Notes: generated by a model not told the origin, from the letters alone. A stretch of 64,000 nucleotides of DNA from Chlorokybus atmophyticus (GCA_009103225.1 RHPI01003536.1:1-64000); one strand, 5' to 3'. Shown: positions 19,851 to 55,796, numbered from the stretch's first letter. Program-made: numbers and translations.

Positions 19851-21830
19851 AGGAAGAAGCAGGATCTGCGAGTGGCAATGCACAAGAAGAGAGCATTGAT
19901 GATGATAATGAGCAACCCCCTCCACCGTGTTCCTTGTTTAACGCTAGGGCAGCATGCCGTAGGCTTGATGTGTTTGTCGCTAACAATCAGACCAGGATTC
20001 TGCAAGAAGGTTGTGGAGTAACAACCATGGAGTAACAACCCTTCCGGGGGTGGCGCGGTCGAAGACAATGGTTGTGTGCAATCTAACTAGGCAGCAGCAA
20101 GGGGACATTCAGATGTTCTTGCGTTGTGATGCATGATTAGTGTTTTCTTGCATTATGCGTGGTTATTTAACAAATGAGCGGTTGCATGTCGTCGTACACA
20201 ACATCAATGATGGTGTGCACGTGGACATGTTCACGGTAATTATTAAAGTAATACTTGCTTGTTATACGACGATACATACTGGAAACAGGGTTCGCTACGA
20301 TACAAGCACCATCATGTCGCATGTGCACAGGCAATGTTTCTGCAATGCGACATAACATTGCGTTATAAACATCAATGTCTTTCAAAAACAAGTGTGGTTA
20401 TTATACAGAGCGTAGACTTTAGCAAGGTACTGTAGTGATTGACTGTTGCATGCCACTGGCAGTGGTTGTTGCTATCAGCACCAATAAAATACATACTAAA
20501 TATTGTAACAAATGCCGCAAGATGTCTCTATATCTATTCAGTGTTTCACTATTGCTTGTGCATATTTAAACTATATGTTATATGATTACATACCTCTCAA
20601 TATATATATTAACATATGCATATAAGAATATTATTTATATGTACATATATATGTGTATATATATATAAATATATACATTGCGTAATGCCTGTTGCTACAG
20701 ATTGGTTGTACTACTTGCTGCCTTAAACTCCTGCCTTGCCCATCCCTCCGCCCCATATGCATGCACTTAGCTAGGCACATAGCCAGTGTACAAAAGATGC
20801 AAGCTGCATCACGCGCATGCACAGCACACAGCATGCATAGCAAACACCCACATACTCACTCAGCACACCGCATTTATGTTTACACTTCACACCACCGAGC
20901 TATCTACTATCCTGCGTACTTACTACTATTACCCCGTTAGACCACATGCAGTGCATGCATGGCAATCGAGTCACAGTTTTTACCTGCACGCACGTGCAGC
21001 TAGTTAGTCTTGCACGGTGTTGCAGTCAGCCAGCAGGACGAACAGCAGACGGACTGACTGACTCCCCCCGCCACTCTCCCTCTCCGTCGCTCTCCTGCCT
21101 CCCACAGCCACAGCCTCACCCGGCTGCTGCCTGCCACTGTGTATGCCATGAACGTTGTGTATGTAAGGGTATGATACGGTGGTGTGCAGCAAGCGTTACA
21201 TATCTTCTCAAACACCCACACTTACATACTCTTGGTCAAATGATGCTGCTTATGTAGAGTCCTCAGCCCAACACGAGGTCGCAACGCGTTGGCAATGGTC
21301 TTTACGCCAATTTTGGTGTCACATGGCACATAATTTATCACTCAAGTTGGCGCAAGATCAAACAAGGCGCAGCACCCAAGTCATTGCTATCACAATTGCG
21401 AAGCATACATCGTGTCATCGGCATATGAATTGTCATGACAAGAAGATACCACCATATCCCCACAAAGAGGGCACATGCATTGAACTCTGAAATCAAAAAT
21501 AACCAAGGCAGCACCTCATATTCTAGACTTTGAAGAGACTGCAATACCACTCAGAATGTACCCACCGGTGGCACTCATAGTCATATGCGGGTGTGAGCGC
21601 TGCGGCAGGACTTGGTGCTCGCGCAGCCAAGGCTCGCTTATCTGCACGAACCATGAATGAACCTTAGAGCAACTTGAAGTGTTCATAGTANTATTATGCG
21701 CAAGAACTTCGAAAAGACATAGAATACGCGTAATACATATGCCCGCACATACGAACAAATAAGGCTCTGTACCGCTTAAGCAAACAACATAGTAATGTAC
21801 ATCCGGTCGGGTTTTGCAAATGCATACTTT

Positions 21831-23621
21831 CTATGGGTCGCCATCATCTTCATACATATCGCTATCATTATCATCCTCCTCCTCAAGCTCTAAATCCTCA
21901 TTATCCAAGTGCCTAGCGTCGTCCTGCATCTTCTCCCGTACGAGATGTTCGTTTTGTCGTCCCGTCTCAGTCGCATCCCCTCGCGTAAGGAATTCTGGCA
22001 TCCACTCCGTCACGCCATATTGCTCGAACAACGTTTTCAATTGCTCATTAAGCGGTTGAAAGAACTCCACCAACATTGCATGCGTCTCATTAGACATGGT
22101 GGGAGCGGGATACGCAGCGCATTCAGAATGGTCGGACATGGCATTGTCGTGCACAACTCTGTCAGGGAGTGGGAGCTCGTACTCAATCCCGAGGTAGTCC
22201 AGCACGCGCGCAATGATGGCCTCGCGATCGTACACCAACTCGTGAAAGTCCACAATGAGAAATTGCCTCTGAGGTGGGAAGAGCCTCCACCACGGATCTA
22301 ACTGAACGGCATACCACGAGTCCAACAGAGCGGAAGGCCGACACTCCTCATACACCTGCACACAGGCACTCTCCATGAACATCCCTTTCCATGCAGACGG
22401 TACAGATGTTGTAAATCACCAAAAACATCTGTTGTACATAGAGGGTGATGCACGAATTGAGATTACCCGTGGCTTGGGGAGGTCTTGGCGTGCGGCCATG
22501 CAGGTGCGGGCCTCGGCCAGGGTCTGTTGGGCCCAATCATCGAACTGGACGTCGCACGGGATGTGCTGAATCACTCGGCCAATGTGGCCAAACCACGAGA
22601 GGGTGCGTTCGACCGGGTCGCGCAGGGAGACTATGAACTTGAGTCCTGCAACGAGCCCGTGACGGGAGTAGTGCTGGCCGATCTGCATCGCCGCGCTCAG
22701 CGTGCGCACGTAAGACGGCGTGCTGTCCATCACGTAACGCACTCTCTGCATGTGCGTAAGTACGTTGGTGCATGCGTGTGTGCATGTGAGCACATGCACG
22801 GGCGCGGGTGTAGGCCAGGGCCTGTGCTACTCTGTGTGTGTGCTTGCTAGCGGTCTGCGTGTGTATCCACATGCGGTGCAGGATGCATGGGCCACAGGCG
22901 AGTGCATACATGGGCGTGTACACGTCCCGGACGCATTTGCATGCTGATGTTGCAACCACAAGTGCATCAGAGTCGACGAGGACCATTTCTCACCCTATTG
23001 GCGAGGCGGCTGTCAGAGCACGGGGGGTAGCGCTTTGAGTACGCTGCCAACCACTCCGGCGTGGTGTGCGGCACCAATGGCTGGTCTGCAAAGTGAATCT
23101 CTTTCGTGTACTCAAGAACCTGCTTAATTGCAATTGGAAGCACACACACTCATCAGTGCTGTGCGTGCGCGTGTTGGCTTGGGTTAACTTGCATCTTAGA
23201 ACGCAACAACCCACAACTTGCCAAAGGGCTCACCTCTCCCTTGCCAAAGTTGTCACTGCAGACGCACATGAAATGTGTCAATGCCACGCCGCGCTGTCAG
23301 AATTGCGTGTTGCAAGCGCACATGCACACCTACACGTACACACCTGACGACATAGCCCCAGAGCGTGGTGGAGCCGCACTTCTGCCCGCCAATGAGGAAG
23401 AGGTTGGGCAGCGGGCGGCCTTTGTAGCACGGTGCGCCACCCGCGGTCCTGCTCAACACCTGCACCTCATCACCATCGCTATCAACACCACTCCCTCTAG
23501 CCAGCAGTGCCCGCCTTGGTGCACGCTCCCCGCTTGCAGCGGAGGCGGCGGCGAGGAGGACAACGACCAGAACAAGAAGGAGGCGGAGCAAGAGGGGTTG
23601 ATGAGGACGAGGAAGAAGCAT
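21831..23621 (-). CDS. Sulfotransferase copy B, 5 exons, apparently intact
   Basis: Same exon structure as copy A, including a 22-nt microexon at 23255-23234. Motifs PNLFLIGGQKCGSTTL, KEIHF, DSTPSY and LRDPVERTLSWF. Signal-anchor N-terminus. Confidence 0.85.
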
Positions 23622-24706
23622 GGCTAGATCTAGAGCGGGTGGGTCAGGTGGCGCTCTCGTCAAGCAATCAACCTGTCGTCGTTGCTGTTTGTCACACGTG
23701 ATTGCAGCACTGCTAGTAGTCCTGCGGTGTGCACACGACAGCCCGTCAATTAACATGAACATGAATGTGGAAAGCATGTGCACTGCACACGCCAACATGG
23801 ATATGCAAGCCTGTCTACTTGTGAGTAAATGCAGCTATGAGCGTGCACTCTGTAACACTACTGCTGCTGCTCACAGTTTGCGTGACGAGACAGACTCGAC
23901 GCATGCATCTGGCTTGGTGGATTTAGGCACCCCGCACCTCAAGGCAGCCGCATGAAACGCGGCGTTGTCGCTGGTCTACAATACGCAGCTGCTAATTGAC
24001 AAGAGAGAACAGCACGCTCACACCATTTGTCCAAGGGCAATGCATGCAGTGCTCTCCTGAGTCTCTGCCAAACTGACGAAACGCTGGGACACTAGTGTTG
24101 GCAAGTTGCTAGTAGTTGCTGCGTGCTGGCTAACGGGCACTCACCGTGTGGGAAACCTGGCGAGTTCTTTGCATGGAGTAGGTCTAGGCCAACCCAAACA
24201 GCCACCAAGACGCGCACATCGACGCCGACCCTGCCGCCGCCGCCGTCAGGCCACGCGTGGCGACGTCGGAAGCCGACACAGGGGTGTGGGGACAAATCTT
24301 GTCTGCCGCAGAGCAACACGAGACTTTGTTTTGACAGCGTTTGTGGCTAGGCTCAAAAACTCGGGCACGCGCGTGGCAGGACGGCGGCTGTGTCCGGTCT
24401 GTCACCTGACGATAGGCCTGCCGATGATCTTTGTGACCGACCAAAAGCGGTCCGAAGCGCTGTGATTCACGTTCATGCATTATGTGATCGCCACGGGAGA
24501 TCGCGATGAGAGAGCTACGACCGCGTCGCGTGCTGCTAGGTATGATGCGAGGTTGAAAACGTGACATCGGCCAGGGGCCCTTAGGGATATTGGGGTGCCC
24601 TGTTTCTGTAATGTTCATGTGGAATCCGGAACATCGGCTTCAAGTAATACTGGTAAGACATAGTATCAAATTGAACTAGTGGTGCGGCCGGCCTTGGTGC
24701 GGGTAG

Positions 24707-27292: not shown

Positions 27293-28072
27293 TATGAATG
27301 CTGGTGGATGAGGCCGTGTCTGCAGCCAGCGTCAACCGGGAGCAATGGGAAGCCCTGCTCAGGTTGTTGGAGCACTGCGTAGTCAACATGTTTGTGCCTG
27401 CCTTGTGGGTGCTGAGGTGGTTGCCGCCGGGGGGGGGGGGGNNNNNNNNNNNNNNNNNNNNNNNNNNNNNNNNNNNNNNNNNNNNNNNNNNNNNNNNNNN
27501 NNNNNNNNNNNNNNNNNNNNNNNNNNNNNNNNNNNNNNNNNNNNNNNNNNNNNNNNNNNNNNNNNNNNNNNNNNNNNNNNNNNNNNNNNNNNNNNNNNNN
27601 NNNNNNNNNNNNNNNNNNNNNNNNNNNNNNNNNNNNNNNNNNNNNNNNNNNNNNNNNNNNGGGGGGGGGGGGGGGGGGGGGGGGCAAATCCCATTTGCGC
27701 ATTGCTTAGTTGTTAATATGTTTGCCTTCAAAAGATGCTCCCATGGACAAGGGTTCCTAGTGAATGATGTGTGGGCACTGAGCATAAAATGCGAGCGAAT
27801 GCTATATTGTGTTGGTGTGTCCTGCTGTGCTTTAGCGCACACAGCTTGTGAGCAGCAAAATTGTGATATGTATTAGATCACATGTGGCAGCAAGTTACAA
27901 TGTGCTGCGCATTGCAGATTTTTGTGTTACTGACAACCCCGTTGTGAACGAGGTTGCAGTGGCATAACTGCCTCGTGTACTCAAATACAGACGAGTCCTG
28001 GTGGATGCAATACACTCGTGCAATTACCAGACACGTTTTTTCACCTGTGTGCACAAAGCACTATTGTCACTA

Positions 28073-30080
28073 TCATGACACTGGCTCATTGCTAACTACG
28101 CCCTGTGCAGCCAACAACTGCCTGCCTACATACTTGGAATAAGCCGGTGGTATGCACTCCACGAGCGTGCACTCGTCTTCAATCCAGTCAATACCGAAAG
28201 CCATGCTCCACCCACTCACGCGACCTCTTGATGCTGCTTGCCCATACACAGGATACACATGTTTCCTTACTATTGTGTGCGACTGTGACACACCCACAAT
28301 GCCGGTGTTGCGGTGTCCAGACAGGTCTCCTAGGTGCTTTGCGGCGTGGTCGCAATAAAGGTCAACCGCCAATGACGGGGACGTCTTAAACACTCGATGC
28401 TTGAAGGTGGAGAGATCAAACATGGTCCCACACAACACCAGGTTGTAATTCAGGTGCTGCGGCGTATCAGGGATGTTCTCGATGACAAAATGTTTGCCAC
28501 TCAAAAGCACCCTTGCCCGCAGGTCGTGCAGTAATGTACCATGGTTCTAAGAGCTGGAGTGTTGCCTACGTTGCTGCTCTGGTATGCAGCGTGCCAATGC
28601 CTGGCACGGGGGGATGGCACAAATGACGTCATAATGTGCTAGGTCTGCAAGCATTGCATCCTCCTTGATGAATGGAAAAGGGTACTCGGGTTGGTCCATG
28701 ACGTCAAGTCCTGTGACATCAAAGCCAGGGCGATGTAGTCCCATGCTTGCGCCACCACCACTACAACACAAGTTCAGCACTTTGGGGCGATGTGGTTGTC
28801 TGTCCGGACGTCGCGCACAGTGCGTTACCCGCAGTGGCGTTGAGTGCCTCCACAAGCACGCTGTGGCTAGTCGAGGTTCCACTTTTCGATTGGTTGGCAC
28901 ACGGCTGCCGCCTACGCGTAGGCACATAATGTCTCCACTGTCGCTGTGGACTACCACCACGTTGTGCTTGTCAATCACCATGTGCTGGATGTCTCCATCT
29001 ACAAATCTCACACTGTGCCTGCCTGCAATAGGATGGGACACCATGAGTGCTCTGCTGTGTGTTATAATGCAACCGCCATTAAGTAACACTTCAAGTGGTC
29101 TTACTTAGGCTTTCGTTGTGTGCATAGAACTGCCCCTTGTACCAGCCCTTGTCAGCTGGCCAATACACCATCACTGTGCGACCAAGTAATGCTGCTCCTC
29201 CTGCCATGCATCGTTGACGCAGATTGTCCAGCTGTGTACGTCTACGTGCATCGGTCTACAGTGCACCATGGTTCGTTCAGATAGAAGGTTTGCGCGCTCT
29301 TGTATGCACATGTCAACACGCCAGGTGCACAGCACGTTGCAGGGTGGCACGCGTACCTTGTGCTGGTCGTTGCAAGCACGAATGCTGGCCACGGGCTGCT
29401 GCGCAGCGTCGCCTCGGCCGCATTGAGCGCGTTGAGACTGATTAAACAGCGTGGTTAATGAAGTGCTGCTACGCATGACTGTTTGAGTGAGTACCACACG
29501 GAAGCAAGCTCACCGGCATCAGATGGACCGCCTGACCACTCGTGGTAGTGCTTGGTCGTGCATAATGCATGTAGCATGGGGGCACCATGCCACTCGAATG
29601 GCACATTGGCATTCGGAGCAAGTGCACTAGTGTTTGTAAACTCTAGCACTGTGCACTTGTGCTTTGCTCGGCAATCGATGATGTGAAGCCCGGCAGCTTG
29701 ATGATGCCAGCATGCAGCGGTAAAGGCATAAAGGTCACAACACTTCGCGCATTCACCTTGATGCCTGGTCATGCTGGAGCGCTGTCCGTTGGTGACAGTG
29801 TATGCATGGCATACTGAGCAAACCAGAGCCTCTTTGGCAGTATGCGCAGCCGTCATCCCTCCTGCAGGTTGACACCATTAATAAGATAAAATGTCGGCAG
29901 TGTTGCAAACCCTAATTTCTAGAGATCAACCCTAACAATCGCGCGAGCTATTCTGCATTATGTGCGCAACTCACTGGTGTATCAGCGCTGCAGGCCCCGC
30001 GACGGCACCAACGGCGGCGGCGGCGGTGGTGGCGGAGCAGTCGTGGGCGTCAGCGATTTGGGAGGCGGTGGGGTTAATAG
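28073..30080 (-). pseudogene. Spliced gene: BED-like Zn finger + Tudor domain + phage/bacterial-type C5 cytosine DNA methyltransferase, with in-frame stops
   Basis: DNMT motifs: I (VLNLCCSGGGASMG), GFDVTGLD..DQPEYPFPF, IV (PPCQ), VI (FVIENIP), LCGTMFDL, VIII (KHRVF), GIDW, X (ECIPPAYSKYVGRQLL). Tudor LLGRTVMVYWPADKGWYKGQFYAHNESL|SRHSVRFVDGDIQHMVID is joined in phase across an 82-bp GT-AG intron (29104-29023). CSVCH...SSMTRH is BED-like. Confidence 0.85.
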
Positions 30081-30271
30081 CTGTCGGAGTTGAGAGCGTG
30101 GTCTCAGGTAACAACAGCATTAGTCTCAAGGAGGCTAGGAAACACGCAGTGGGTGATGAGGCGCTGATCACTGCATGTTGTGGGATGAGGCACAGATGGT
30201 CAGATGTCGCACATGTCCATGTTTGTCAAGTCCTCCACCTCACTGCCGGAGTTGTTGAAATCGGTCAATGA

Positions 30272-33200
30272 TCAACCTTCAACCTGTTCTCTTGCATCTT
30301 GAGGTTGGTTTGCATGGATTGACCCTGGGGATGTCGCTGTTGGTTGTTGTGTACTGTACCCAGCCTCCGCAAAACTGTGAGCACCATGGTGTTCGCAACC
30401 GATTCATGAACAGCTCCTGGTGCACTGCTTGCCTGCTTTTTTGCACTTGCATCTTCTGGTGTTGCACCTCCTCGATTTGTTGCCGCAGCCATGCATAAGA
30501 AGGTCACGCCTAGAGATGGCTGCCTCCATATTCTCCGGTGGATCCTGCACCGCATACCAAACACCATGTACCTTATGGTAGCCATACTCATGAAGTGCAG
30601 GCAAACGCATGTCCTGGTTGCAGCTTTGCATCCACATGTTGACAGCGTGGATGGTGCGCAAGCACTCCAGCCATAGTGCATCGATCATGGGAATGGTATT
30701 ACGTGGGGTTGCTGTTTGTTTTATTTCACACTGTCTTGTGAATGGCCTCCAGCCACTCTGCCAAATATTGCTTGTCGTGTTGAAGGTATTACATGGGTGA
30801 TGCTTGTATCCGGTCAGCTTGCCCTTCATACAGGAGTCGAGGGTCGAAGGCACTAGGAAGAAGCGCGTGGGCTCCAGACTTAGCAAGACGGTCGAGTCAT
30901 GACGGACTCCGGACCAGGCTGCTTGGTAGAGCCTTGGGAGAAATCGCGTAGCTTCGTGGATACGTAAGCTTAGCAGGCGTGGCTTAGCTTGTTGGAAAGC
31001 TCTGGTTGTGAGCTAGACAGCATAGCTTACATAACAGCAATCGGCTGAGTATAGCGCACGCGGTGCTTGCCAATGTAGACGTGTGTAGAGACTGGCGGGG
31101 TATAAAGCCCAGACTTGTTGCAATGAAGATTAGAGGTCACGATGTAGCATGTGTGCGGATGCTATGACGGCAGTAGCAGTCATGCTCTTGTGTTGATGTT
31201 GTTGGCGTGTCACTTGCACGTGTGTATGTCAACATGTCGCTGGTGGTGGCTGCAGGGCCATGGAGTTCAAAGAACAAAGACACTGGCGTACCACTGCCAC
31301 AAATGAAGACCTGTACTTCTCAAAGTGAGCACATCCTATGAGCCTTAGCATAAGAAAGCTCATCTCATGCTCCTCGTTTGTGACGTTGCCCATGATAAAA
31401 GCAGCATGTTGCGTAAGCACGTTGCGCCAGAAAAACTGTTTTGATATGCTTCAATGAAAGACATGTAGTTGCATCCAGTTGCAGCATACACCAACAACAT
31501 CAACCGTCCTCGCTTTCCTTCAGCAATGCTGTTGATCCGCATGCTTCGTACATGCTGTTGCAGTCCAGTCAAGCTGATGAACGGAGGGCGTGCACCAGCC
31601 TTGGAATGTTGTGCCACCTGCACTGTCACATCCTTGAATGACATGTCCAATGTCTCGCTGACTGCCAGGCCGATCATAGTGACATCCGTGTCCGGTGAGA
31701 AGATCAAAACCTTGTTGTATGGCGCGGGGCTGCTTCCCCATGATTGCATGCGTAGTCATCAATAAACCAGAAAGACAAGTCGTTGTTGTCGCTGCGCGAC
31801 ACGACGCACACCTGGTCCCCCACATGCTCCAAGTCTGACCCCCCCGACAGCACCACCTCCTGATCCGGTCTTAGGTGCGGAGCCACCACCATGGGTAAGT
31901 GCTCCGTTATCAGCTCGCAACAATTGGCTTGAGATTGCGATCCTTGAGTACATGACGCCATGACTTGGGCAGTTCAGTGTCCCGGTTGAGGCATCTGCCA
32001 GAGGATGCCTCCGCTCCGTCATGCGTATGTTGCAACGAGGGCTTGACACCATACTAGTATCTGGGCGTGTCAAAGACCACGGGTATAGAGCGCACGGTTG
32101 GGTTCGCCAGCATGCTGAGGATACTTGTTCGCATCGGAATGTGCTATGTAATCTTTGATGCTGCCTTGCGGCAATGGGCAGTCTTGATTGATGAGAAACA
32201 TCCCCTCCAGCACGGTGCGTTCAACACCAGCATGTGAATTATGTGACAAGCACGGCGTGTCAAGTGGAGCAACCTCCATCAGGAACTTCGCCTTGTCGTC
32301 GGACCTCATCTTTCCCGTCAACTCGTCGAACAGGGCTTAAGGGTGTTTGCAATACCTAGCAGTCACAATCTCGCCTGCAGCTCTAATGGATGCCAATCGT
32401 TTGGCGACAAGCATCTATTAACGGTATTGTTTGAGTACTGTGGCCTATTTGGAAGTGCGCTTCTTGGCAGGCGCCATGTTGTTAAGATTGATGCGTCTAC
32501 TCGCTTTGCAGGCCTGCTCCTCATGGCAGATGTTAACCTTCCCAAAACTAATTATGGCCTCAACTCCCACCAGGTATTGGTTAGCAAAATCAGCTGATGC
32601 AGCTGGAGATGCTGGCACCGTGTGGTGAGGTGCGTGAGATATGGCAGAGGTGGACGCGCCATGCTTCGCTGCTTTGTAAAACATGCAACATGTTCCCGAT
32701 GTCGCTACCACAGCGCGACGCATCTTGTTTAAGAGTGCGCACCACCATGTTGTTGTCATCGTTAGCATCAGCATCCATGTCAGTGCAGGTGGGTGCCATC
32801 TTAAGCAGAAGTTGACGACCTAGTTGTTTCTATGTTTGGCTGCGTTCCTTAAGATACTGCGATCTCTCAACCAACCGTGGTGTTGTGGGGCTACACAGGG
32901 ACATCTTCATGTCCCTGTTGACCTGACATTCGTGCGCCTCGTCCAGGGCCACCAATCTGCTTGGCGTCCCAGTCAGGCTTAGAGCAAAGCCACTGGCAGA
33001 CAGCATATCAAGCACCGACTGTGGCATCATCTGCAGGTCCGCAAGGTGTAGAGACATCACGCGCTGGTAGTTGTATCTGTCCCAAGCGAAAGACAGCGGG
33101 CTGAGACCCTTCCAACTGGCAAGATGCAGGTGCCAAATTTTCTGCCTTGCAGCGCAAAACAGTGCAAGGTAATCCAGCATGGAGATCCAACATGGAGATC

Positions 33201-33330
33201 CACCACAACTGCCATGTTGCATCTCCTCTGGCCTCTCTCGCAGAACAGCTCGAAGATGATTGCTTGGTGGCATTAACTCCATTGGTACGCGCGTCCTCCT
33301 CACACTGCCTGGCGCAAAACGCACAATAAT
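30272..33330 (-). mobile_element. Academ(X)-type transposase, C-terminal half (end of DDE domain, XPG/PIN-like nuclease, Cys8 finger), pseudogenised
   Basis: YLALFCAARQKIWHLHL...FAWDRYNYQR...ALDEAHECQVNRDMK; LEGMFLI; VVFD...TERR; NHGEA; FSPDTDV; ATGCNY; IPMIDALWLECLR...MW...EYGY; GCG...C.TRRCKCKKAGKQCTRSCS*IGCE. Confidence 0.8.
30778..31234 (+). mobile_element. Solo LTR (457 bp) inserted in the Academ XPG region
   Basis: Termini TGTTGA...TCAACA. Perfect 5-bp TSD TGTCG at 30773-30777 and 31235-31239. GGGTATAAAG near 31100. Excision rejoins ORFs 31229-31420 and 30404-30886 in frame. Confidence 0.9.
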
Positions 33331-33399
33331 AGAAGCAAGTACCATTCGTTGGCGCATTGAAGTGGTCCCACGAGGCGAGCTGGCCACCTAGCATGACTG

Positions 33400-35108
33400 A
33401 TGGCCGTATGCGGGTTGCGGCCAGCTCCTCTGATGACTCGCTGGCAGGTGGTGACACCTGCTGCATGCGCATACAGCACTCAAATGGTGTGTCCAACTGT
33501 GGACGGCAAGAGTCACAGTGAGTTTGGGGCAGACTGCCGGCTTCGACTTGCAGCGGGTGGGGTAAGGTAGGTGCAGAAGCCACATCCGTTGTTGCATTGT
33601 GCTGTGGTCTCGCCGGTTGCGGCAAGAAGGATTGTTGCCCTGCAATTACCGGTGCTGCTCGTGGAGGGAATGGCAGTGCATGAAGGACTGGTGTCGCGGA
33701 AGGTGGTTGCGCTCTGGCTGCGAGGGGAGCAGGAGCGGCAAGTAAGACCACTTGTGCATGCAGCAAGGGGGGCTGTATATAGGACCCATGATAAGATGGC
33801 TCACAATATTGCAAAGGACGAATGTAAGCTTATGCAGTGCCTGCCGCATTGTTACCAAGGCACAAGCATGAAAGACAGCGACTTACCTCAATGGCCCGTG
33901 GGCTGCATGGAGCATGGGACTCCCTTCGGAAGCCATGGGGGCTGACAAGGTGGTATTGGGTGCACTCTCCCCGCCACCCTCGATCGCAAACTCGTCACGG
34001 AGCTCGTGAGCCATGGGCACACCATGCGCCACTGCCCCAATGGACATGTCGGAATTCAACAGGCCAACATGCATATTAAACTAATGCCGCATTGCCGCCG
34101 CGCCCATCAGCAAGTGGGATTGAAGGACCAGTTGATGGGATTAACTCCAGGCTTGCATAAGAGCTCCAACAAGACCTAGTGCACTGTGGTGCTGTCAACC
34201 AATCACATGTGGGTTAGCTGCATGCTTGCGACACTGCAATTGCAATAGTCAATTGCGTCACACCGTCATCAGTTGATTGCTTTGAACAGTCACCTGCGTC
34301 ATTGCTGATTGATGCACGAATGATTGCATGGACTGCGTTATTGCTGGTTGATGCACTACTGGTTAAATGCCGGACAAATGGCCACGCGCTCCTGTGCTCA
34401 AACCCAGCCTACTTCGTTCGGCACGCGCGCGCGACTTCGCACGCTCACGCACATCCTAACATGCAAAGGTAGGCATGCATTGGAGGTGCATGCAGTCAAC
34501 ATGCACAGCGAGATAAGCAACAACATACCGCCGCCCAGCTCGATCTATCTGCTCTGGCTTCCGCAATGTCGGCTTGACTGTAGGGTGGGTATGGGTGAAT
34601 GGTGGAGGCCTGCAGCCACGCTACATGTATCACATAGACTGCGCTAAAAAACAAATTGCTCTTGCAAGGAAATGCATGTGACTGTTGAGCGTACCTCTGC
34701 ATTCCTTTATGCTTGTTCCCACAGTCGCAATTGGTCCCGCATGGTTCTAACAAGGGGCTCCAAGGACTGCAGCTCCTGATCCACTCCTTGTTGCAGAAAT
34801 CGAGCCACCAAGCAGCTCTCTGTGTGAAGATGGTCTCTAATGGCTTGCCTGCGGGTTTCTCCAATGTTGGTGATGCATGTTGGACAACCCCATTGCTAAC
34901 GCCTGCCATCATCCATGACGTGGCGCCCGGTAGTTGCTGGATTCGCTGCTTGAACTTTTACGACCACAACTTCTCGAAAGATGTGCCACGCCGCCGCCGC
35001 CGCCTCCTCCGCCTCCTGGTCCTCCGCCTCCTAGTTGAACCCAGGTCTACTATGCCTGACATTCGACCCGTCATTGACCTGGTGCCCCTGCGTGTCATCA
35101 TCCGGCCA
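33400..35108 (-). pseudogene. Multi-exon decayed gene of unknown function
   Basis: Several GT-AG-bounded coding-like blocks (e.g. ORFs 34496-34912, 33883-34074 and the Pro-rich part of 33008-33814). Stops present. No family recognised. Confidence 0.35.
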
Positions 35109-38000: not shown

Positions 38001-39794
38001 CTGATAGCAATGGAAGTTACTATCAGGTCCCTGTAACAAGATTACAGGTGGACTGAGCCACGACAGTCTAAATTAGTATTTTCAAGTGCACGGCCGTTGC
38101 CAGTATTTAGTCGGCCGGCAAGGAAAACATATTGCGACAATGCGCTTCCAGTGTGGGCCTTTCAGCAAGTGGTTGCGGAAAGTGCCATGTTGCATTTCCT
38201 CTTGCCTTTCTCTCGCAGAACAGCTCGAAGAACTTGCGTTGCTTGGGCATTAACTCCATTGGTATGCGCGTCCTCCTCACACTGCGTCTTGATTGTCGAA
38301 TCTTCCTCCCTCCAGATGTCATGCATGTGCCTGTACAGAGCCTCCTATACTTTGCAGAGGAAGTTGTGGATGCGCTTCAAGTGTGAGCCTTCCAGCAAGT
38401 GGTTGCGGAAAGTGGAAGCAGAGAACCCACTCTCTACCGCCATGGCATCCATGCCAGCATACAAATATATTTTCATCAGCACGGGCTACATGTGCATCAG
38501 AACATTGAAGTCTCCAGGTAGGGGCACAACTCAATCCCAATAGCCAGGCTCTGCTCTCTTCAAGGAGACCATCAAGGCAAAGGTCTTTCGATCACCTGTT
38601 ACACATCTCGCTTTAAGCATCACTCAACACAACCTTGTTGCGCAGCTGCAACAGTGCCATCTTCAGGTTGTTAATCTTGTCCGGACAGAATGGGAGCACT
38701 GACAGGTACTCAATATCATTAGCCTCTGTAGTTGTGTTCCCACTAGCCATTTGCACATATCTCGCCCAATTGTCCATAAGAGGCGGCAATGCCGACTGAT
38801 GCTCAGCACGCATCCGCAATACCACAATGTTGTGCAATGTAGCGCGAAATGACTCCATTGCGCACTTCTCGGCAGGCAGCATGTTGAGCATTGGTTCACT
38901 ACGCACTGTCGCATGAGCCCTCGGCCGTGGAGGTGGTGGCGGCATGGGCTCCACCATTGGCTCCAGAATCATGGCCTCTGACAGCGTGCGCTTGCGTGTG
39001 GTCCGCACGGGATTAGCCGTGTAGCATGAGTGTGTGTGCGGCGCACAGCATATGGAGATGCAACAAAATCAGCCCAACTCTGACTTACCTCTAATTCTAG
39101 TTCTGCAGCAGCGTCCTGTCCCACCGTGAAGATGAGTTGAGTCGATGTAGCATGAATGTCACCAATGGTTCCTCCTTTGTACTTAGCGATGATGCCCCGC
39201 CCGCACATCCAAATTGTCAATGGAAGCCAAGACATGTCTCCAAGGGCCAGGCTGCAATTGCGCCACAGAGTCCATAGCATGAGTAGCACGCCGGTGTATA
39301 TGACGGTCCAAATGACTGCATATGGCTGTCACTCCAATGCGATTCAAAGTCTTCAGTTGCTTGTTGCCCTGGCTTCATGTCCACCTGGTCCGTGATCACC
39401 ATGTGCACCGGCGACACAGCCCACTTGCTCCGTGCATAGATTGCAGACTGCATTATGCACAGTGTCTTGTTACGCAGCATCACCATGGACCGTGCGTGCC
39501 TAGGTCCAGGATCCTTGACCCAATCCATTGCATTTAATCCTGTCAGAGCACCAAACACCTTCCGTGACGGCATACACGTGTTCTCCCACTCCTTCGGCCA
39601 GTCCACGAAGCGCAAGTCATGAACCACCATGTTGCGTTTAACCTTGCGCTTGCGCTCCACCTCTATGTGTTTGTTGAGCGTACGCAGTAGTGCGACAGGG
39701 AGATCCTCTTCATCCACAGCCTGCACTCCATTGGCCTTGGACTGCGTCGTTGCAGGCAAGTTAGTCACCCTCATTGCATGACGCAGGAGACATG

Positions 39795-41071: not shown

Positions 41072-41802
41072 GCGTGTGCTACGGGCGGGGCAAGGGTGCT
41101 TGATGCGCGCAAAGCCAGCTATGTAAGGAAGGTGAGGTGCTGCCATTGGTTGTTCAGGGAATTCGTTGAAAATTAACGGCCGTCATGGGTCATCATGTGA
41201 CATGCCTAATATCATCCTTATTATAACAATTTATTGCAGCATGTATTGCATTTGTCGTGCATCTGCAATTTAAGCCGTGAATGTGCAATCTATTTACTGC
41301 ACGCGCTAACGGTGATGAACATGTAGTCCACATGTGGGTAAATCATCAAATCGCTATTCAAGATGGAGCATAATAGTCACAAGAAACGAACGTGTCCATG
41401 CCTACACAACTACGTGCGCGCGCATGCACACTATATTAGCAGGGCCGCTAGCAGAGCGTCCGCCTCCGCAGCAGCCGCTGTCGTCGTTGGTAGTGTCAAG
41501 CCAAGCATTGCCGACACTACTGCTGCTCCCCTCTTGAGCACTGGCAAGCCTTGAGCCCGCTGCAGCACGCACGACACGCGTTGCCTATGAAGCGAAAAAA
41601 GGCGACAGCCGGTTGGGCGGGAGGTCCTTCACTGACAACGTGCGTGGCACATGCGGATTAATGGTGTAAATTGATATCGGCAGGGATAGGACTGCACGCT
41701 TGGTCGTTGAAGTTCACGCTTATGACCCATGACTCGATAGACTTCATTGATTACCGATTAACATTGAGGCCATTTGCCGTAGATGCTCTGATTTTCGCGG
41801 GT

Positions 41803-44105
41803 CCAATACCTGGGTGAGAGTGCTCAGTACTCGCATGCATTCACCAGCATCCATCTCACACGTTTGCATGGCATGACTGAAACACCTAACCCAACCGCAC
41901 CTGAGGTGGGTCATGTGTTGCGGTAAGGTGAGAAGAGTGACACCGCGGTCTCTGGCCTTTTCCAAGAATTCTGGGTTCATGCGGGAAGAGTGTCTATCAA
42001 GGAGGAACAGCATGGGGCGGTCTACACTGCAAACCCGAGGTACATGATTAACAAAGAAGTCAGACCACTCTGCAAAGATCTCCAATATTATGTATGCATT
42101 GTTTTGCATGCGCATTACAGAGCAGGATGGTGACGGTGAGTGCTGGAGGTAGTTGTCTGTGAATTGCTTGCCCTTGAAGATATACAAGGGGGTGCATGAA
42201 TTGCCCGCTGCATCAACACAAGCCATGACGGACATATGCTCCCGGCTGCCAACTTGGTTGTAATAAGGCTTCTTATAGCCCTTCCTGCAGATCACTTCGA
42301 CTATGCCTGCAGGCATGCCCATTATGATCTCACTATCATACATCAACCCTTACTTGTTATAGGACTTACCTTAGTTGTCAAACTCAAACCCAGTCTCATT
42401 CGCATTGCATATGTGTGCAAGGTCACAAATGTCCAGCTCCTCCTATGTCTGTGCATACAAGTTAAAATGCCTTCACGTTGTCTCGCGTGCAGGCCTGCCA
42501 TCTGCTGCAGTCAAGCCTCCCTGCCACTCTGGAGGCAAGGTTGTGTCTCGCCATGAACAACCTCAACCACTTGTACCCAGAACAGCCAGCTGCAACAAAA
42601 CGCTTGAGGCGATCATCCTTCAACATTGCAAAATTGATTCTGCGCAATCTGTAACACACACACAGAGGTAAGTAAGACACACCCTGATGCACAATCAACA
42701 TAATTGCCGTACAAGCGTACACACACATGGGCACATGTGCACACTGTGAGCATACTTGCATGCTGCACATGCATACATGCTGCGACACATGCATATCATA
42801 TGCATGAAGGCAGTGCCTTCATGCATAATGCACTTACATGCACGCTTAGAACATGTATACTCACCTTTTAAAATAGGGCAGGCCTAGTGACTACATAATT
42901 GCCGTCTGCCATTCAGTTAACCCAGACCACTACCTCTTCCTCCTCTGCTTCGGTGAGGACCGGTTGGCAACCAGGGCTGCGAGGCAGCTGCAGCTTCTCT
43001 GGACATGTGTAGTAATCGTAGAGTGTGGACTTGGCGACCCCATGCTTCTCTGCAGCGACCCTCAAGCTGACACCAACCTTAACGTCATATACAGCTACCG
43101 CCACCTTCATGATTATGCCTCTACCATGGTAGCTAATGTAGTGCATACCCGTGCGCCTTGTCATGCTTGCCACCTGCCTCAAAACCCTCTTACTGCGACC
43201 CTTAAGCTTCTTGAGCCTGCGAGGTGCTGAGGGTGTGCTGGCATTGCGCTTGCTGCTCTCTGCTAGGGTCGCCTCAGGCGTCCTGCATTCACACATTCAA
43301 AGTCATCATAAAGGGGCTATGATGATTGTTGCAACCAACACTAAGCCCTAAGCTTGGCTAATACTATTAATAGCTAGTAGCTAGTGTGTATAGCATGCTA
43401 GGTAGCTGGTATAACTTGATGCAAGTGCATGTGTGTAAGCAACAGCAATGCCATTGCACGACTACACAACCATGTTTGTGTGTATGGCATGCAGCATGTA
43501 TGTGTGTGCACCTCTGGGGTTGTCTTGTGATGCTTGCTGCGCCTGTGTAATTACCATTCTCTGTCCTTGCAACCCCCACACCCGCGAGTGACCCTTGAGC
43601 AAAACCCCAACACGCATAAACCGCCCACAACCCAACACACAAGCATATAATGCAACTACCATTGCACTTGCATTTGCATAGCGCGAATCCCACTCTCGGA
43701 CACCATTTTCACACTGTCACACTGCCCGCCATAATTTGCAAACGGTGAGGCACTTAGACAAACCATCTTAGGGTATTATGGTTTACAACAATGGCTATCT
43801 ATAAAGCTTAACCATACCCAATTCGGACAACTGTGCTAGGATCGTGTATAGCTCAAAGTCAACTAAATTGTGCACGCATCACTGAGTGTCACTGCTAGGA
43901 CTGCAGCCATGGCGCCAAAGCCAATCTAAATGACTCATTCAAGCTGTTACTTGGTGGTCCACACCCATTGGTCATAAGCAACACACCAATGCATTGTATA
44001 CCCCCATTGAGTGCCGACACACACACAGGCCACTACAATCACACAAAGGCCTCAAGGCAGGTGTTGTCCAATTGGGCCACTGTCCGAAATTGGTTCCAAT
44101 TACCC
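41803..44105 (-). mobile_element. pogo/Fot1-like element 2 (psq-HTH, Tc5-HTH, DDE_1), 3'-truncated, intron-containing, decayed
   Basis: GVSLRVAAEKHGVAKSTLYD; PVLTEAEEEEVV; KWLRLFMARHNL; ICNANETG; SREHMSVMACVDAAG...PLYIFKG; LLDRHSSR; LPQHMTHLQVLD, then a break. 5' end TA|GGGTAATTGGAACCAATTTCGG at 44107-44084. Confidence 0.85.
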
Positions 44106-46706: not shown

Positions 46707-48781
46707 GTGAGAGAAAGCGTGCATGGCGCGCTCAGCATCCTCCTCCTTATCGTTGCTATCAGTGCTGCTGTCTGCCTTCCCGCTGCAGCAGCTGAAGATG
46801 TCAAGGACGGTGTCGTTCAGATTCTTGAGCTTCTTCCACGTGAGAGGCCATCCACAGTGAGGAAGCGCTGCCACCAGTCTCTTGAAGGCAGGGCGGAGCG
46901 CTTTCTCGAGGATGGCGTAACGCCCGTGACGCTTGCGGACTGCGAGCGCAGCCCGCCTTGCGTCACGCCGAACTTCATGCACGAAGGAGACGACGCCAAA
47001 GACTACAAACACTGCGCAGCAAGGCCAAAACCCACAGCCTGGTAAGATCTAGAGAAACATGCACAAGGCATGCGGGCTGGGTGCATGCATTGCATGTTTC
47101 TGTCGTGTGATCAGCATCATTAGATTGGTTGAGAACAGACTAAAAGCAATCCGCCTTGTTGTCTGTCAGGACAACGTGGGATACGTACGTGAGGACAGTA
47201 TGGATGATGACGTCACCCTTGGTGGCAGCCCGCATCCGATGGCGCTACTAGCGGAGCTCACAGGCACCAAGACAGTCAATATGGTTGGCGACTCCATCAT
47301 ATTCCACGTGCGCAAGCTACACAAACTGCTGATTGTTGCAGATCAGATTGCATGAGTTTATGGGCATCATGTGCTCGCACAGGCACATATAGATACGCGC
47401 ATGCATTAGCCCCCCCCCCCCCCCCCCNGCGCATGCACACGCACACATGCGCACACAAATACATACTGTGAGAGCAAAGACACCCGCTCCCGCACTCGCA
47501 CGTGCACAAGGATACATTGTGAAGTACACTCTTGCACACGCGCACGCATATCCTTGCACATGCGCACATGCACGCGTAGTTGTCTGCATGCGCGTGAACT
47601 TGGAGACGTTCTACTCGTTGCTGTGCGGGCTAGTGCGCGCGGGGCTCGGGAAAAAGGGTTGCTTGGCTCAGGACAACATTGGCAGAGCGCGGCGCATCCT
47701 TCACAAAGGTGAGTGAGTGTATGTGTGTATGTGTGTGTCCATTCCCTGCCTGTATTGTGCCATATGCTCTGTCATGATGAAGTTGCACTTGTTTGGTTCT
47801 AATGACAGGGTGTGGCGGCACGCTGTTTCCCGCGTGTGTTCTTACAACAAGGATGTGCTGGCGGGATTTCTGGGCCGATATCGCCATCGTCAACTACGGC
47901 CTAAACTACACAGTGCGTGTGTATTGATGTACATACATACACGCACGCGCACACTCGCTGTGGACGCGGGTGTGCATGCATTCAGCATTATATGGCCGCC
48001 TGATTACACTTGCCAAGTGAAGCAGCCATAGTTGTGCCTGGGTACCGATAATGCAGGTAGCTCACTTTCTTCCAACGAAGCACGACTTCTCGTGCGCGAA
48101 GTTTTGAGCTTGAAAGGTTTGCCGAAGACATGATCAGCTTCCAATCACAGTGAACACCCCCGGCGGCAAGATCGCTGTGGTCAGAGGGATGAGGTGAGAG
48201 ACAACACAACACACCACATCACGAACATGATGATGAGTCATCTAGTTCACGCGCTGTTGTGTGGGGGTACAGCGAGTAGCATTTCCAGCACTCGGGCGCG
48301 TGGAACCTGTCCGACCCAACGCACCGAAGCAACTGCACGTGCGCGAGGATGGAGCCGCGCATGGCGGAGACAAACCACGTGGCCACGCAGGACCGCATAC
48401 TACAAGAGGTGTATACCATATGCACATGTGCGTCCGTGTGCGTCCGTGTGTGAGGGTGCGCGTGAGCGCGTGTGCGTGCGTGCGTGCGTGCATGCGTGTT
48501 GTCAACTTTTTGTGTCACCCAACATGTCGATTGTTTTTAGGTGGTGGTGCGCGCATTGTCATCATCTGATCGGCTGCTGTTTCTGCCGCTGTACGACCTG
48601 AGGGTGCAGCGGCACGACATGCAGGCGTGCAAGCGCATTGGAGGCAACCAATCCAACTACGCGTTGACTGGCTGCTGTAATCGTGAGTCGTGCATGTCGT
48701 AACGCTCGTGTTGGCCTCTCTCATCACTGCACGCACGCACGCACGCACATGGTATGTGCGCGTGTACGCGCGTACACACAA

Positions 48782-52844: not shown

Positions 52845-54277
52845 ATACCGTTCGAACAACGTTCCCAACTGCGCGTTAAGCGGTTGAAAGAACTCCACCA
52901 ACATCGCATGCGTGTTGTTGGACATGGTTGGAGCGGGATACGTTGCACATACGTGAAGAATGGATGTGGGCTTGTTGTGCACGACTCTGTCGGGGAGCGG
53001 GAGCTCATACTCGATCCCGAGGTAGTCGAGCACGCTCATTACGGCCTCGCGCTCGTACACCAACTTGTGAAAATCCACATTGATGAACTGCTTCTGAGGT
53101 GGGAAGAGACTCCACCACGGGTCCAACTGGACGGCATACCACGAGTCCCATAGAGGCGAAGGCCGACACTCTTCATACACCTGCACGCAGTCGTCAACAT
53201 CTTCTTCTATGCAGGCAATGCATGTTGTTGGTGGTAAAGGTTGATGCATGAGTCACTTACCCATGGCTTGGGGAGGTTTGTTCGCGCAGCCATGCAGGTG
53301 CGGGCCTCGGACAACACTTGTCGGGCCCAGTCATTAAATTGGACGTCGCACGGGATGTGCTTTAGCAAACGGCCTTTGTGGCCAAACCACGAGAGGGTGC
53401 GTTCGACGGGGTTGCGCAGGGGGGTGACCATGAATTTGAGTCCTGCGACGAGCCCGTGACGGGAGTAGTGCTGGCCGATCTGCAGCGCCGCGCTTAGCGT
53501 GCGCAAGAAGTCATGCGTGCTGTCCATCACGTAACGCGCCCTCTGCATGTGCCTGTGTCTGTAGGCATGTGCACGTCCCGGACTCTGTTGCATGCTGATG
53601 TTGTAACTACGAGTGCATCGTCAACAAGACCACCACTGACTCCATCGGCGAGGCAGCTGTCAGAGCACAGGGGATAGCGCTGGGAGTACGCTGCCAACCA
53701 CTCCGGCGTCATGTGCGGCACCAACGGCTGGTCTGCAAAGTGAATCTCTTTCGTGTACTGGAGATCCTACTTGTTCGGAAGCACACATACACACAGTCAT
53801 CAGTGCTGTGCGTGCGTGCGTGCGTGTGGTTGGCTTTGGTTACTTTGCATCTTGGTGCACAAAAACAAAACCGACATGCCCAAGGGCTCACCTCTCCCTT
53901 GCCAAACATCTCGCCTGCACAAGCACGCGAAGTGTCAATGCCACGCCACGCTGTCAGCATTGCGTGTTTCAAGCGCACATACACACCTGACGACATAGCC
54001 CCAGAGCGTGGTGGAGCCACACTTCTGCCCGCCAATGAGGAAGAGGTTGGGCACCGGGTGGCCTTTGTAGCACGGCGCGCTACCCGCGGTCCTGCTCAAC
54101 CACCTGCACCTCATCATCCTCGCCATCAACACCACGCCCTCCAGCAAGCAGCAGCGCCCTCCTCGGTGCGCGCTCCCCGCGTGCATGCACAGTGGGGGCG
54201 CCGGCGAGGAGGACGACCACAAGGAGCACAAGGAGGAGGCGGAGCCAGAGGGGACGAATGGGAAGAAGCCTACGCAT
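52845..54277 (-). pseudogene. Sulfotransferase copy C, frameshifted and 3'-truncated
   Basis: Same motifs as copies A and B, but with a +1 insertion near 54100, a 23-nt rather than 22-nt microexon (53914-53892) and LRDP changed to LRNP. Homology ends at ...LFER, where it joins a GT61 intron. Confidence 0.85.
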
Positions 54278-55796
54278 GACTAGAGCGGTGGGTTGAAAAA
54301 TTGCGCTCTCATCCACCAACCAACTCATTGTCGCTGTTTGTGTGTGGTGCTACTGCGGTGTACACAGACCACCCGGTCAGTTCATACGAAGGTTCAATGC
54401 CGCATGCACTGCGCTTACATACCAACATGGGTACAAGACTGTGCGAGTGGTTACTCTGCAGCTATGTGTGCGTGTGCGCAGTGCTGCTGCTGCACGCAGC
54501 GAGTGATGATAGACTCTCAACATGCATATGATTCGACAATTTTCCAAGGGCATCCCGCACCTCGAGGCAGGCAGGCAGCGGCATGCAGCAAAAAGTATGA
54601 GAAAGTGCGGGTCTGCAGTCAGTTTACAGCATGCAGGCGGTGAATGACAAGAGAGGCAACACTAACCTCACACAGGCATCTGTCCCTGAGAGCAACACAG
54701 TGCTCTTGTACAGCAACGACGACCCTGACGCCGCCGCCGCCGCCGTCTCGGAGCTCACTCGGGGATAGTCGCCCGTGCTATTCGTGTGCAAAAATTGTGA
54801 ATCCTGTGGGGCGTGCAACGAGTCTTTTCACCGCACATTAGCCAGTCCATATAGCCATAAATGCGTTGCAGCGTAAAGACTTGGTCACGCAGCCTGTGTG
54901 GCACGCAGGATGCCCCTGCTGGTCTGGGCCTAGGCCTACTTAGCTAGCGACTGCCAGGAATGTGTCAGAATTTCGTGCATCACATAGGGTAAGGGTCCCT
55001 AATGTGGGAACGGCCCCTTATGTGGGGATTAGCCGTTTTTTGCCTGCAACTTCTGGCCTGTCAGGCCATTGCCGGCCAAACTTTGGGGCGTGATACATCT
55101 CAGTGCGAGCTATCTAGCGACCCCATACCCGACCCAAACAGTTGAGTAGAGCGGGAGATCTGAATTTTCAAATTCCATTATTTTCTTATTTTAACCGGGG
55201 TTGGCCTACCCTCAACTTTGGTAGGCTGTAACTTTGTGGTATCAATGCCTATTTGAATGATGTTTTGTTTGTTGGCTTCCTATGGGTTAGGAGAGCTTAT
55301 TTACCAAGTTTCATGACAATGTACGCGGAAATACAAAAGTTAGAATGCTCACAATTTTGGGGTGTCGCGCAACGCAACCCCCAAAAAGTAAAGTTGTGAT
55401 TGTGGCTATTGTAGCAGTTGTAACTTGGTGTGGCGCGTTGTTATGTTGTTTAATAGTTGTATTGCAACTTGGATTGCCTTCAGCACTCAATGAGCTGTGT
55501 TGTTGTGATTTTGTAGCACATAGTTGAGGTAGGGTGCGGGTGAGGGGGATACTTTGCATGCAAGTGAGGGCATGCAATTGAGGAGCAGTCCGAGATAGGT
55601 GGAGACAGCCAGTGAGATTGCCAAGGTTCAAGTTCTGCAACTAGCTACCTCTACAAACAACTTCCCTATGGTCCACGGCAACTCTGCAAGGGTGGGTGTG
55701 TTGCATGCTTAAGCAACTTTGTCATCATCGTGGCACTTGGCCACTCAGACCACCCTCGCATCATGTTGCTGATATGCAACTGCTCTCAGGGCAAAC

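Follow-up and report, generated by a model that had tools for sequence, protein, structure and literature searches.

Does a DNA transposon of a green alga carry its own cytosine methyltransferase, joined to a domain that reads chromatin? The question is raised by a stretch of 64,000 nucleotides from Chlorokybus atmophyticus (GCA_009103225.1 RHPI01003536.1:1-64000; hereafter the window, with all positions counted from its first letter). Here, a minus-strand gene at 29856-28073, predicted to encode a Cys/His-rich region, a Tudor domain and a compact cytosine-5 (C5) DNA methyltransferase, has a decayed transposase-like gene directly upstream of it on the same strand, an arrangement that was already pointed out in the initial annotation of this DNA. 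On balance, we think it probable that the window copy is the pseudogene of a multi-copy chimeric nuclear gene, in which a Cys/His-rich region, a Tudor domain of the PDS5C/RDM15 type and the compact C5 methyltransferase are combined and which probably travels as a transposon passenger.

The gene is described by a minus-strand frame of three exons (29856-29514, 29200-29105 and 29022-28073) that runs for 462 codons from its own ATG, with no frameshift, to a terminal stop at 28075-28073; the exon/intron borders were predicted from reading phase and the GT-AG consensus alone. Exon 1 (29514-29856) begins with the ATG at 29856-29854 and encodes the Cys/His-rich region of 114 codons, and its open frame joins exon 2 in phase across intron 1 (29201-29513; 313 nt, GTGAGC...GGCAG). 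The N-terminal half of the Tudor domain is encoded by exon 2 (29105-29200), which is followed by intron 2 (29023-29104; 82 nt, GTAAGA...TTGCAG, phase 1), splitting the Tudor domain, and by exon 3 (28073-29022), where the domain's C-terminal half is followed by a linker and then by the core of the compact C5 DNA methyltransferase (28795-28076). An alternative 5' frame, 29861-29759, shows a C-x2-C...C-x2-C-H pattern; the frame starting at the ATG was preferred on account of its 114 open codons and its in-phase junction with the Tudor exon. The whole frame is interrupted once, by a TAG at 28549-28547, which is codon 305 of 462 and aligns with the conserved Trp of the relatives' G-H-x-W-x-H-E-N-L motif. 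The chance of an open run of 304 codons is (61/64)^304, approximately 5e-7, and 157 more codons follow the stop; the length of the open frame is far beyond chance. Because codon 305 is TAG, the enzyme cannot be made from the window copy, and this copy of the Tudor-methyltransferase gene is a pseudogene. It had been called dead on account of several stops in frame: dead it is, but through this single stop and without any frameshift.

The catalytic part was recognised in the frame at 28795-28076, which contains in the proper order the C5 motifs L-N-L-C-C-S-G-G-G, I-P-P-C-Q, I-E-N-I, K-H-R, G-I-D-W and I-P-P-A-Y. The first of these aligns to the D-L-F-C-G-x-G-G of motif I, while I-P-P-C-Q of motif IV, with the catalytic Cys, and I-E-N-I of motif VI occupy nearly invariant columns, so that the catalytic PC, EN and HR pairs reported earlier are all found, the last of them within K-H-R. 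Nearly all near-invariant columns are retained, the deviations outside motif I being V-to-I in E-N-V and R-to-K in R-H-R. An exhaustive phmmer search returned 2229 matches, every one of them via the methyltransferase part, and a word-index search returned six compact proteins of 104-226 amino acids with 48-63% identity. In addition, actinophage genes annotated as DNA methyltransferase matched both halves of the core by tblastn against phage genomes, with hundreds of records (E 5e-16 for the N-half and 5e-8 for the C-half). Across their whole length, 17 full-length relatives align collinearly with the window protein.

When the window's own pieces were compared with Pfam and NCBIfam, only weak generic matches to S-adenosylmethionine (SAM) methyltransferases were obtained; likewise, phmmer searches of PDB with the methyltransferase halves gave only motif-I matches to unrelated SAM enzymes, and viral contigs scanned with the single protein gave no match. 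All 17 aligned full-length relatives, on the other hand, match PF00145 (best 5.9e-11), and the family profile recovers the solved C5 methyltransferases 3g7u, M.HaeIII, DNMT2 and M.HhaI at 1.2e-6. Because these collinear relatives match PF00145 and the family profile finds the solved enzymes, the window gene is assigned to the compact branch of the C5 family by way of its relatives, at the level of sequence comparison; the search against PF00145 that had been proposed gave matches with them and none with the window pieces. We also observed that P0007 and P0008, the two best scorers in the protein library, each join two compact C5 methyltransferases in tandem within one protein of approximately 450 amino acids.

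The reader part of the gene lies across intron 2, where a GT at 29104-29103 and an AG at 29024-29023 join the Tudor and methyltransferase frames in phase. The spliced Tudor peptide of 62 amino acids matches PDB entry 7de9_A (E 7.5e-6, residues 1-47) in an alignment that crosses the splice junction, which bears out the earlier proposal of a Tudor domain spliced to the methyltransferase in phase across 29104-29023. The structure 7DE9 is that of the Tudor domain of Arabidopsis thaliana PDS5C (RDM15) bound to monomethylated lysine 4 of histone H3 (H3K4me1; bioRxiv 10.1101/2022.05.28.493846), and in the alignment the window protein has aromatic residues where the solved domain has them. Matches to the Pfam Tudor families were below the cut-offs (SH3_Hsr9, 0.029; Tudor_3, 0.15). 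By this alignment, the window Tudor domain appears to be of the plant PDS5C/RDM15 type, is predicted to bind H3K4me1 and comes most likely from the green-lineage host. The plant PDS5C/RDM15 and MSH6 Tudor domains, represented by 7DE9, are the best solved match with their aromatic residues kept, but they sit on cohesin-regulator or mismatch-repair proteins and not on a methyltransferase. In an intact copy of the gene, the Tudor domain would recognise histones by a methylated lysine (H3K4me1 in the case of the solved relative) and would thereby bring the methyltransferase to marked chromatin, where 5-methylcytosine (5mC) would presumably be written. Library and contig searches yielded no protein or locus in which the Tudor or Cys/His part was matched together with the methyltransferase. 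The Cys/His region shows the pattern C-x2-C...H-x3-C; its description as a BED-like finger found no backing, with no Pfam match at E up to 1, no PDB match and only weak generic zinc-finger leads in Atlas.

The origin of the methyltransferase core was approached by phylogeny. The 156 retrieved proteins were ranked by the summed score of the methyltransferase N- and C-halves, and the window protein was entered into the trees with its stop read through as X. In a quick tree of 102 rows, the window copy fell inside a five-member clade with a Shimodaira-Hasegawa-like approximate likelihood ratio (SH-aLRT) support of 96, and a careful tree of 80 rows, including 30 phage homologues from IMG/VR, returned the same clade with ultrafast bootstrap (UFBoot)/SH-aLRT values of 99/99, the bootstrap being not fully settled. 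All four clade partners of the window copy (P0017, P0108, P0047 and P0022) carry within the methyltransferase an insert of approximately 100 amino acids with a methyl-CpG-binding domain (MBD; PF01429), positioned between motif VIII and the G-I-D-W block. The window copy is up to 46-47% identical to these MBD-insert methyltransferases and keeps the clade-specific motifs on either side of the insert as well as the C-terminal tail. These enzymes form the sister clade of the window copy but differ from it in the presence of the MBD insert, in having neither Tudor domain nor introns, and in their location in virus-like arrays. The compact C5 methyltransferases of actinophages and bacteria (190-230 amino acids, weak members of PF00145) are like the window core in being collinear with it and in having all motifs in order, with an identity of 50-60% in the N-half against 30-36% in the C-half; unlike the window gene, they are without introns, Tudor domain or Cys/His region, and they are not the nearest clade in the tree. 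Calling the enzyme phage-type was therefore right for the family, whereas its nearest kin are the MBD-insert clade and not the actinophage enzymes. When IMG/VR and metagenome contigs were scanned with profiles, the matches were only compact phage or bacterial enzymes with 40-57% identity to P0017, none of which had the clade motif or a Tudor domain.

Two of the clade partners are encoded on metagenomic contigs of 25-29 kb, L004 and L009. These contigs encode a topoisomerase II of the eukaryote/nucleocytoplasmic large DNA virus type, an mRNA triphosphatase, a ribonucleotide reductase small subunit and protein kinases, along with a YqaJ exonuclease, a U-box protein and an aquaporin, and their genes form dense intron-free arrays on both strands. 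From this gene content we infer that L004 and L009 are giant-virus-like; an origin from the compact genome of a picoeukaryote is less probable. Because the closest relatives of the window core are the MBD-insert methyltransferases, two of them on giant-virus-like contigs, the core is, as judged from its sequence, most likely of giant-virus origin. Loci for MBD-insert methyltransferases were recorded at L004:9938-10843, L008:2028-3050, L009:9239-10534, L010:1064-2359 and L001:447-1616; the MBD lies in the variable region of these enzymes, so that a writer of 5mC contains its own reader of that mark. In L009 and L010, from two samples, an identical in-frame stop separates the N-half of the methyltransferase from the MBD, and the locus is called there as two genes.

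A viral source of the core must be distinguished from a viral remnant in place, that is, a methyltransferase left behind by an endogenised giant virus and invaded later by transposons. Such a remnant would agree with the position of the nearest relatives on giant-virus-like contigs, and orphan DNA methyltransferases (DNMTs) of viral origin are known in eukaryotes (PMC12344493). The window gene, however, has two introns of the spliceosomal type and a plant-type Tudor domain and is devoid of the viral MBD insert, and no other virus-like open reading frame (ORF) was found among the long ORFs of the window; we regard a remnant of this kind as very improbable. The proposal that a compact C5 methyltransferase of prokaryotic or viral type has, in a eukaryotic genome, obtained introns and been fused to a Tudor reader is upheld.

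We next consider the neighbour that raised the transposon question. The decayed transposase-like gene (30272-33387, minus strand) was delineated from its ORFs and is disrupted by a stop codon, by what appears to be a frameshift and by a nested insert. Its Cys-rich C-terminal exon (30407-30772, minus strand) is interrupted by the stop; a PIN-like ORF (31363-31755, minus strand) with the motifs S-P-D-T-D-V and A-T-G-C follows the apparent frameshift; and a further minus-strand ORF lies at 32833-33387, the ORFs thus reaching approximately 33.4 kb. The nested insert (30773-31234), 462 bp with TGT...ACA ends, is high-copy: sequencing depth there is approximately 100 times that of its flanks, and the contig of a paralogue that is approximately 10% diverged skips exactly this segment. 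Atlas ties the ORF at 31363-31755 to clusters of eukaryotic hypothetical (repeat) proteins from arthropods and molluscs and to one additional cluster with a CXC (TCR) domain, a pattern that fits a widespread repeat-borne protein. Neither Pfam nor word-index homologue searches with the upstream ORFs returned a family, and one Atlas search gave no usable match. When the gene was checked for an XPG/PIN-like nuclease, there was no PDB match, and a single-sequence AlphaFold model was unusable (predicted local distance difference test score of 37.7). The label Academ, which the initial annotation gave to this gene, is therefore only putative, although it agrees with the XPG-like domain and Cys-rich finger of that superfamily.

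The most direct link between the two genes would be a single expression unit, namely an Academ transposon that specifically acquired the methyltransferase and expresses it within the transposase unit or by read-through from it, by way of two short upstream exons and without a separate promoter. The adjacency of the two genes on the same strand agrees with this, as do the GT and AG dinucleotides that are indeed present at the borders of the two extra segments, 30243-30081 and 29974-29862. However, the sequence within this proposed chain, exons included, is low-complexity (GCC)n without coding signal, the (GCC)n tract lying at approximately 29990-30050, and the linker exon is offset by 1 nt from the transposase frame, as the initial annotation itself stated. 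Both borders of the segment 30243-30081 are formed by a 12-nt direct repeat with one mismatch (30081-30092 and 30243-30254), which makes a small insertion or duplication as plausible for this segment as an intron. Furthermore, the methyltransferase frame has its own ATG at 29856, separated from the upstream gene's stop by a spacer of 415 bp (29857-30271, minus strand), contrary to the claim that no room is left for a separate promoter, and attempts with Pfam, word-index searches and structure modeling did not yield an Academ identity. We consider this single-unit explanation improbable; the exon chain to the transposase stop and the missing promoter are probably wrong, and nothing here favours a transcript that is fused or that lacks a promoter of its own.

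This leaves the question of whether the methyltransferase gene moves with transposons by looser means. A precedent is found in fungi, where TET/JBP dioxygenase genes are carried by 11 DNA-transposon lineages, unrelated ones and Plavaka among them, and pass passively between lineages (PMC12730594). As in the window, a DNA-modification gene there stands beside transposase genes, and the case shows that cargo can be shared among lineages; in contrast, the fungal enzyme removes or oxidises 5mC whereas the window family writes it, and the fungal elements have defined terminal inverted repeats (TIRs) as well as target-site duplications (TSDs). In the window, paralogues were compared through contigs of low-coverage DNA runs, none of which bridges the methyltransferase-transposase junction. 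Contigs of diverged paralogues cover the 3' end of the methyltransferase gene, its 5' end and the transposase-like gene; both genes are multi-copy in the genome. By analogy with the fungal TET/JBP genes, we infer that the window gene most likely moves as a passenger of DNA transposons.

Several observations weigh against this passenger reading and against the giant-virus derivation of its core. First, the nearest paralogue contigs differ by approximately 6-7% over the methyltransferase ends versus approximately 10-13% over most of the transposase part, and the upstream gene carries all three of its lesions within approximately 1.5 kb, compared to one stop in 1.39 kb of the methyltransferase gene. 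Because of this unequal divergence and the larger number of lesions in the transposase part, the data, from small samples, hint weakly that the two genes may not share one insertion history. Second, an inverted-repeat search across 27.7-42 kb found no convincing TIRs or TSDs enclosing both genes, the TSD expected of an Academ element being 3-4 bp long and the 3' side being hidden by an assembly gap at 27442-27660, and self-BLAST of the 64-kb window found neither a second methyltransferase copy that would define the element borders nor an empty site for the methyltransferase region. Third, with respect to the core, the window's own methyltransferase pieces give no Pfam match, its motif I carries D-to-N and F-to-C changes, and the window copy is without the MBD insert that defines its nearest clade, approximately 100 amino acids being absent with both flanks kept. 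Lastly, the viral nature of L004 and L009 was judged on gene content, and both introns are predictions from sequence.

Some of these points would suit a gene that is multi-copy in its own right, as a host family or as a selfish unit, and that lies outside the transposon termini and came to stand next to the transposase-like gene through a repeat-rich neighbourhood or a shared insertion preference. The Tudor-methyltransferase gene has its own ATG and a complete structure of three exons, it is less decayed than its transposase-like neighbour and has closer nearest paralogues, no TIRs were found, and the window is pieced together from repeats of several types. A host family, though, would be likelier to have been annotated and to turn up in protein libraries, yet searches of these returned no Tudor-fused relative. 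We judge such independence to be rather unlikely, and we retain the transposon passenger as the preferred reading. Contamination as the origin of the gene was rejected, given its introns and plant-type Tudor domain and the repeats that surround it.

Fusions of readers and writers of epigenetic marks have counterparts in functional host genes, namely the plant chromomethylases and the N4CMT of bdelloid rotifers, the latter a bacterial methyltransferase joined to a chromodomain. As in the window gene, a DNA methyltransferase is coupled there to a reader of a histone mark, and the catalytic part of N4CMT was horizontally acquired; the differences are that the reader is a chromodomain and not a Tudor domain, that the enzymes belong to other methyltransferase families and that these host genes have no link to transposons. 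With regard to mobile elements, de Mendoza et al. reportedly described in 2018 DNMTs carried by retrotransposons of dinoflagellates and charophytes within the coding region of the element. The likeness to the present case is that a mobile element is associated with its own cytosine methyltransferase, whereas the window gene is separate, stands beside a DNA-transposase-like gene and comes from a different, compact virus-type family. DNMTs inside retrotransposons have, together with the viral-origin orphans in eukaryotes, already been described (PMC12344493). Fusions of a chromatin reader with a transposon protein are a common occurrence (bioRxiv 10.1101/2021.11.30.470311), and prokaryotic adenine methyltransferases in retrotransposons are reported in the recent literature. 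The literature and databases that we searched contained no C5 methyltransferase associated with a DNA transposon and no Tudor-fused compact one, in agreement with the earlier statement that no described Academ-DNMT element was known.

Within this framework, a stronger form of the passenger reading can be put forward only tentatively: DNA transposons of two unrelated superfamilies in the alga may share a cassette in which a giant-virus-derived cytosine methyltransferase and a host-type, H3K4me1-reading Tudor domain that aims it are combined, so that the transposons would themselves write 5mC on marked chromatin. Were a shared transposon cassette of this kind real, it would be the first DNMT borne by a DNA transposon and, as a writer, the counterpart of the TET/JBP cargo in fungi. 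Provided that intact copies are active, the gene would link giant-virus-to-algae gene flow with a new reader-writer architecture, and transposons might thereby shape the methylation landscape of the host or their own visibility to it. What the window copy itself offers is a full gene structure with a single lesion, and an independent phylogenetic placement of its catalytic core.

The remainder of the window holds further repeats and duplicated genes. A high-copy repeat is present at 33216-33600, with a depth of 75-240 in two runs, and the segment 33207-33308 recurs at 38180-38285 with 88% identity. A sulfotransferase-like unit, with weak matches to Sulfotransfer_1/3, is found in three copies (2830-5294, 21812-23686 and 52845-54963) that are 81-91% identical, probably representing a duplicated host gene family among repeats. 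Runs of G or C abut assembly gaps (N runs) at 27661-27683 and 47410-47427 and are probably assembly or sequencing artefacts. Finally, a minus-strand ORF at 41747-42349 encodes a DDE_1 (pogo-type) transposase domain (E 8.5e-9), which belongs to an element distinct from the neighbour of the methyltransferase gene.

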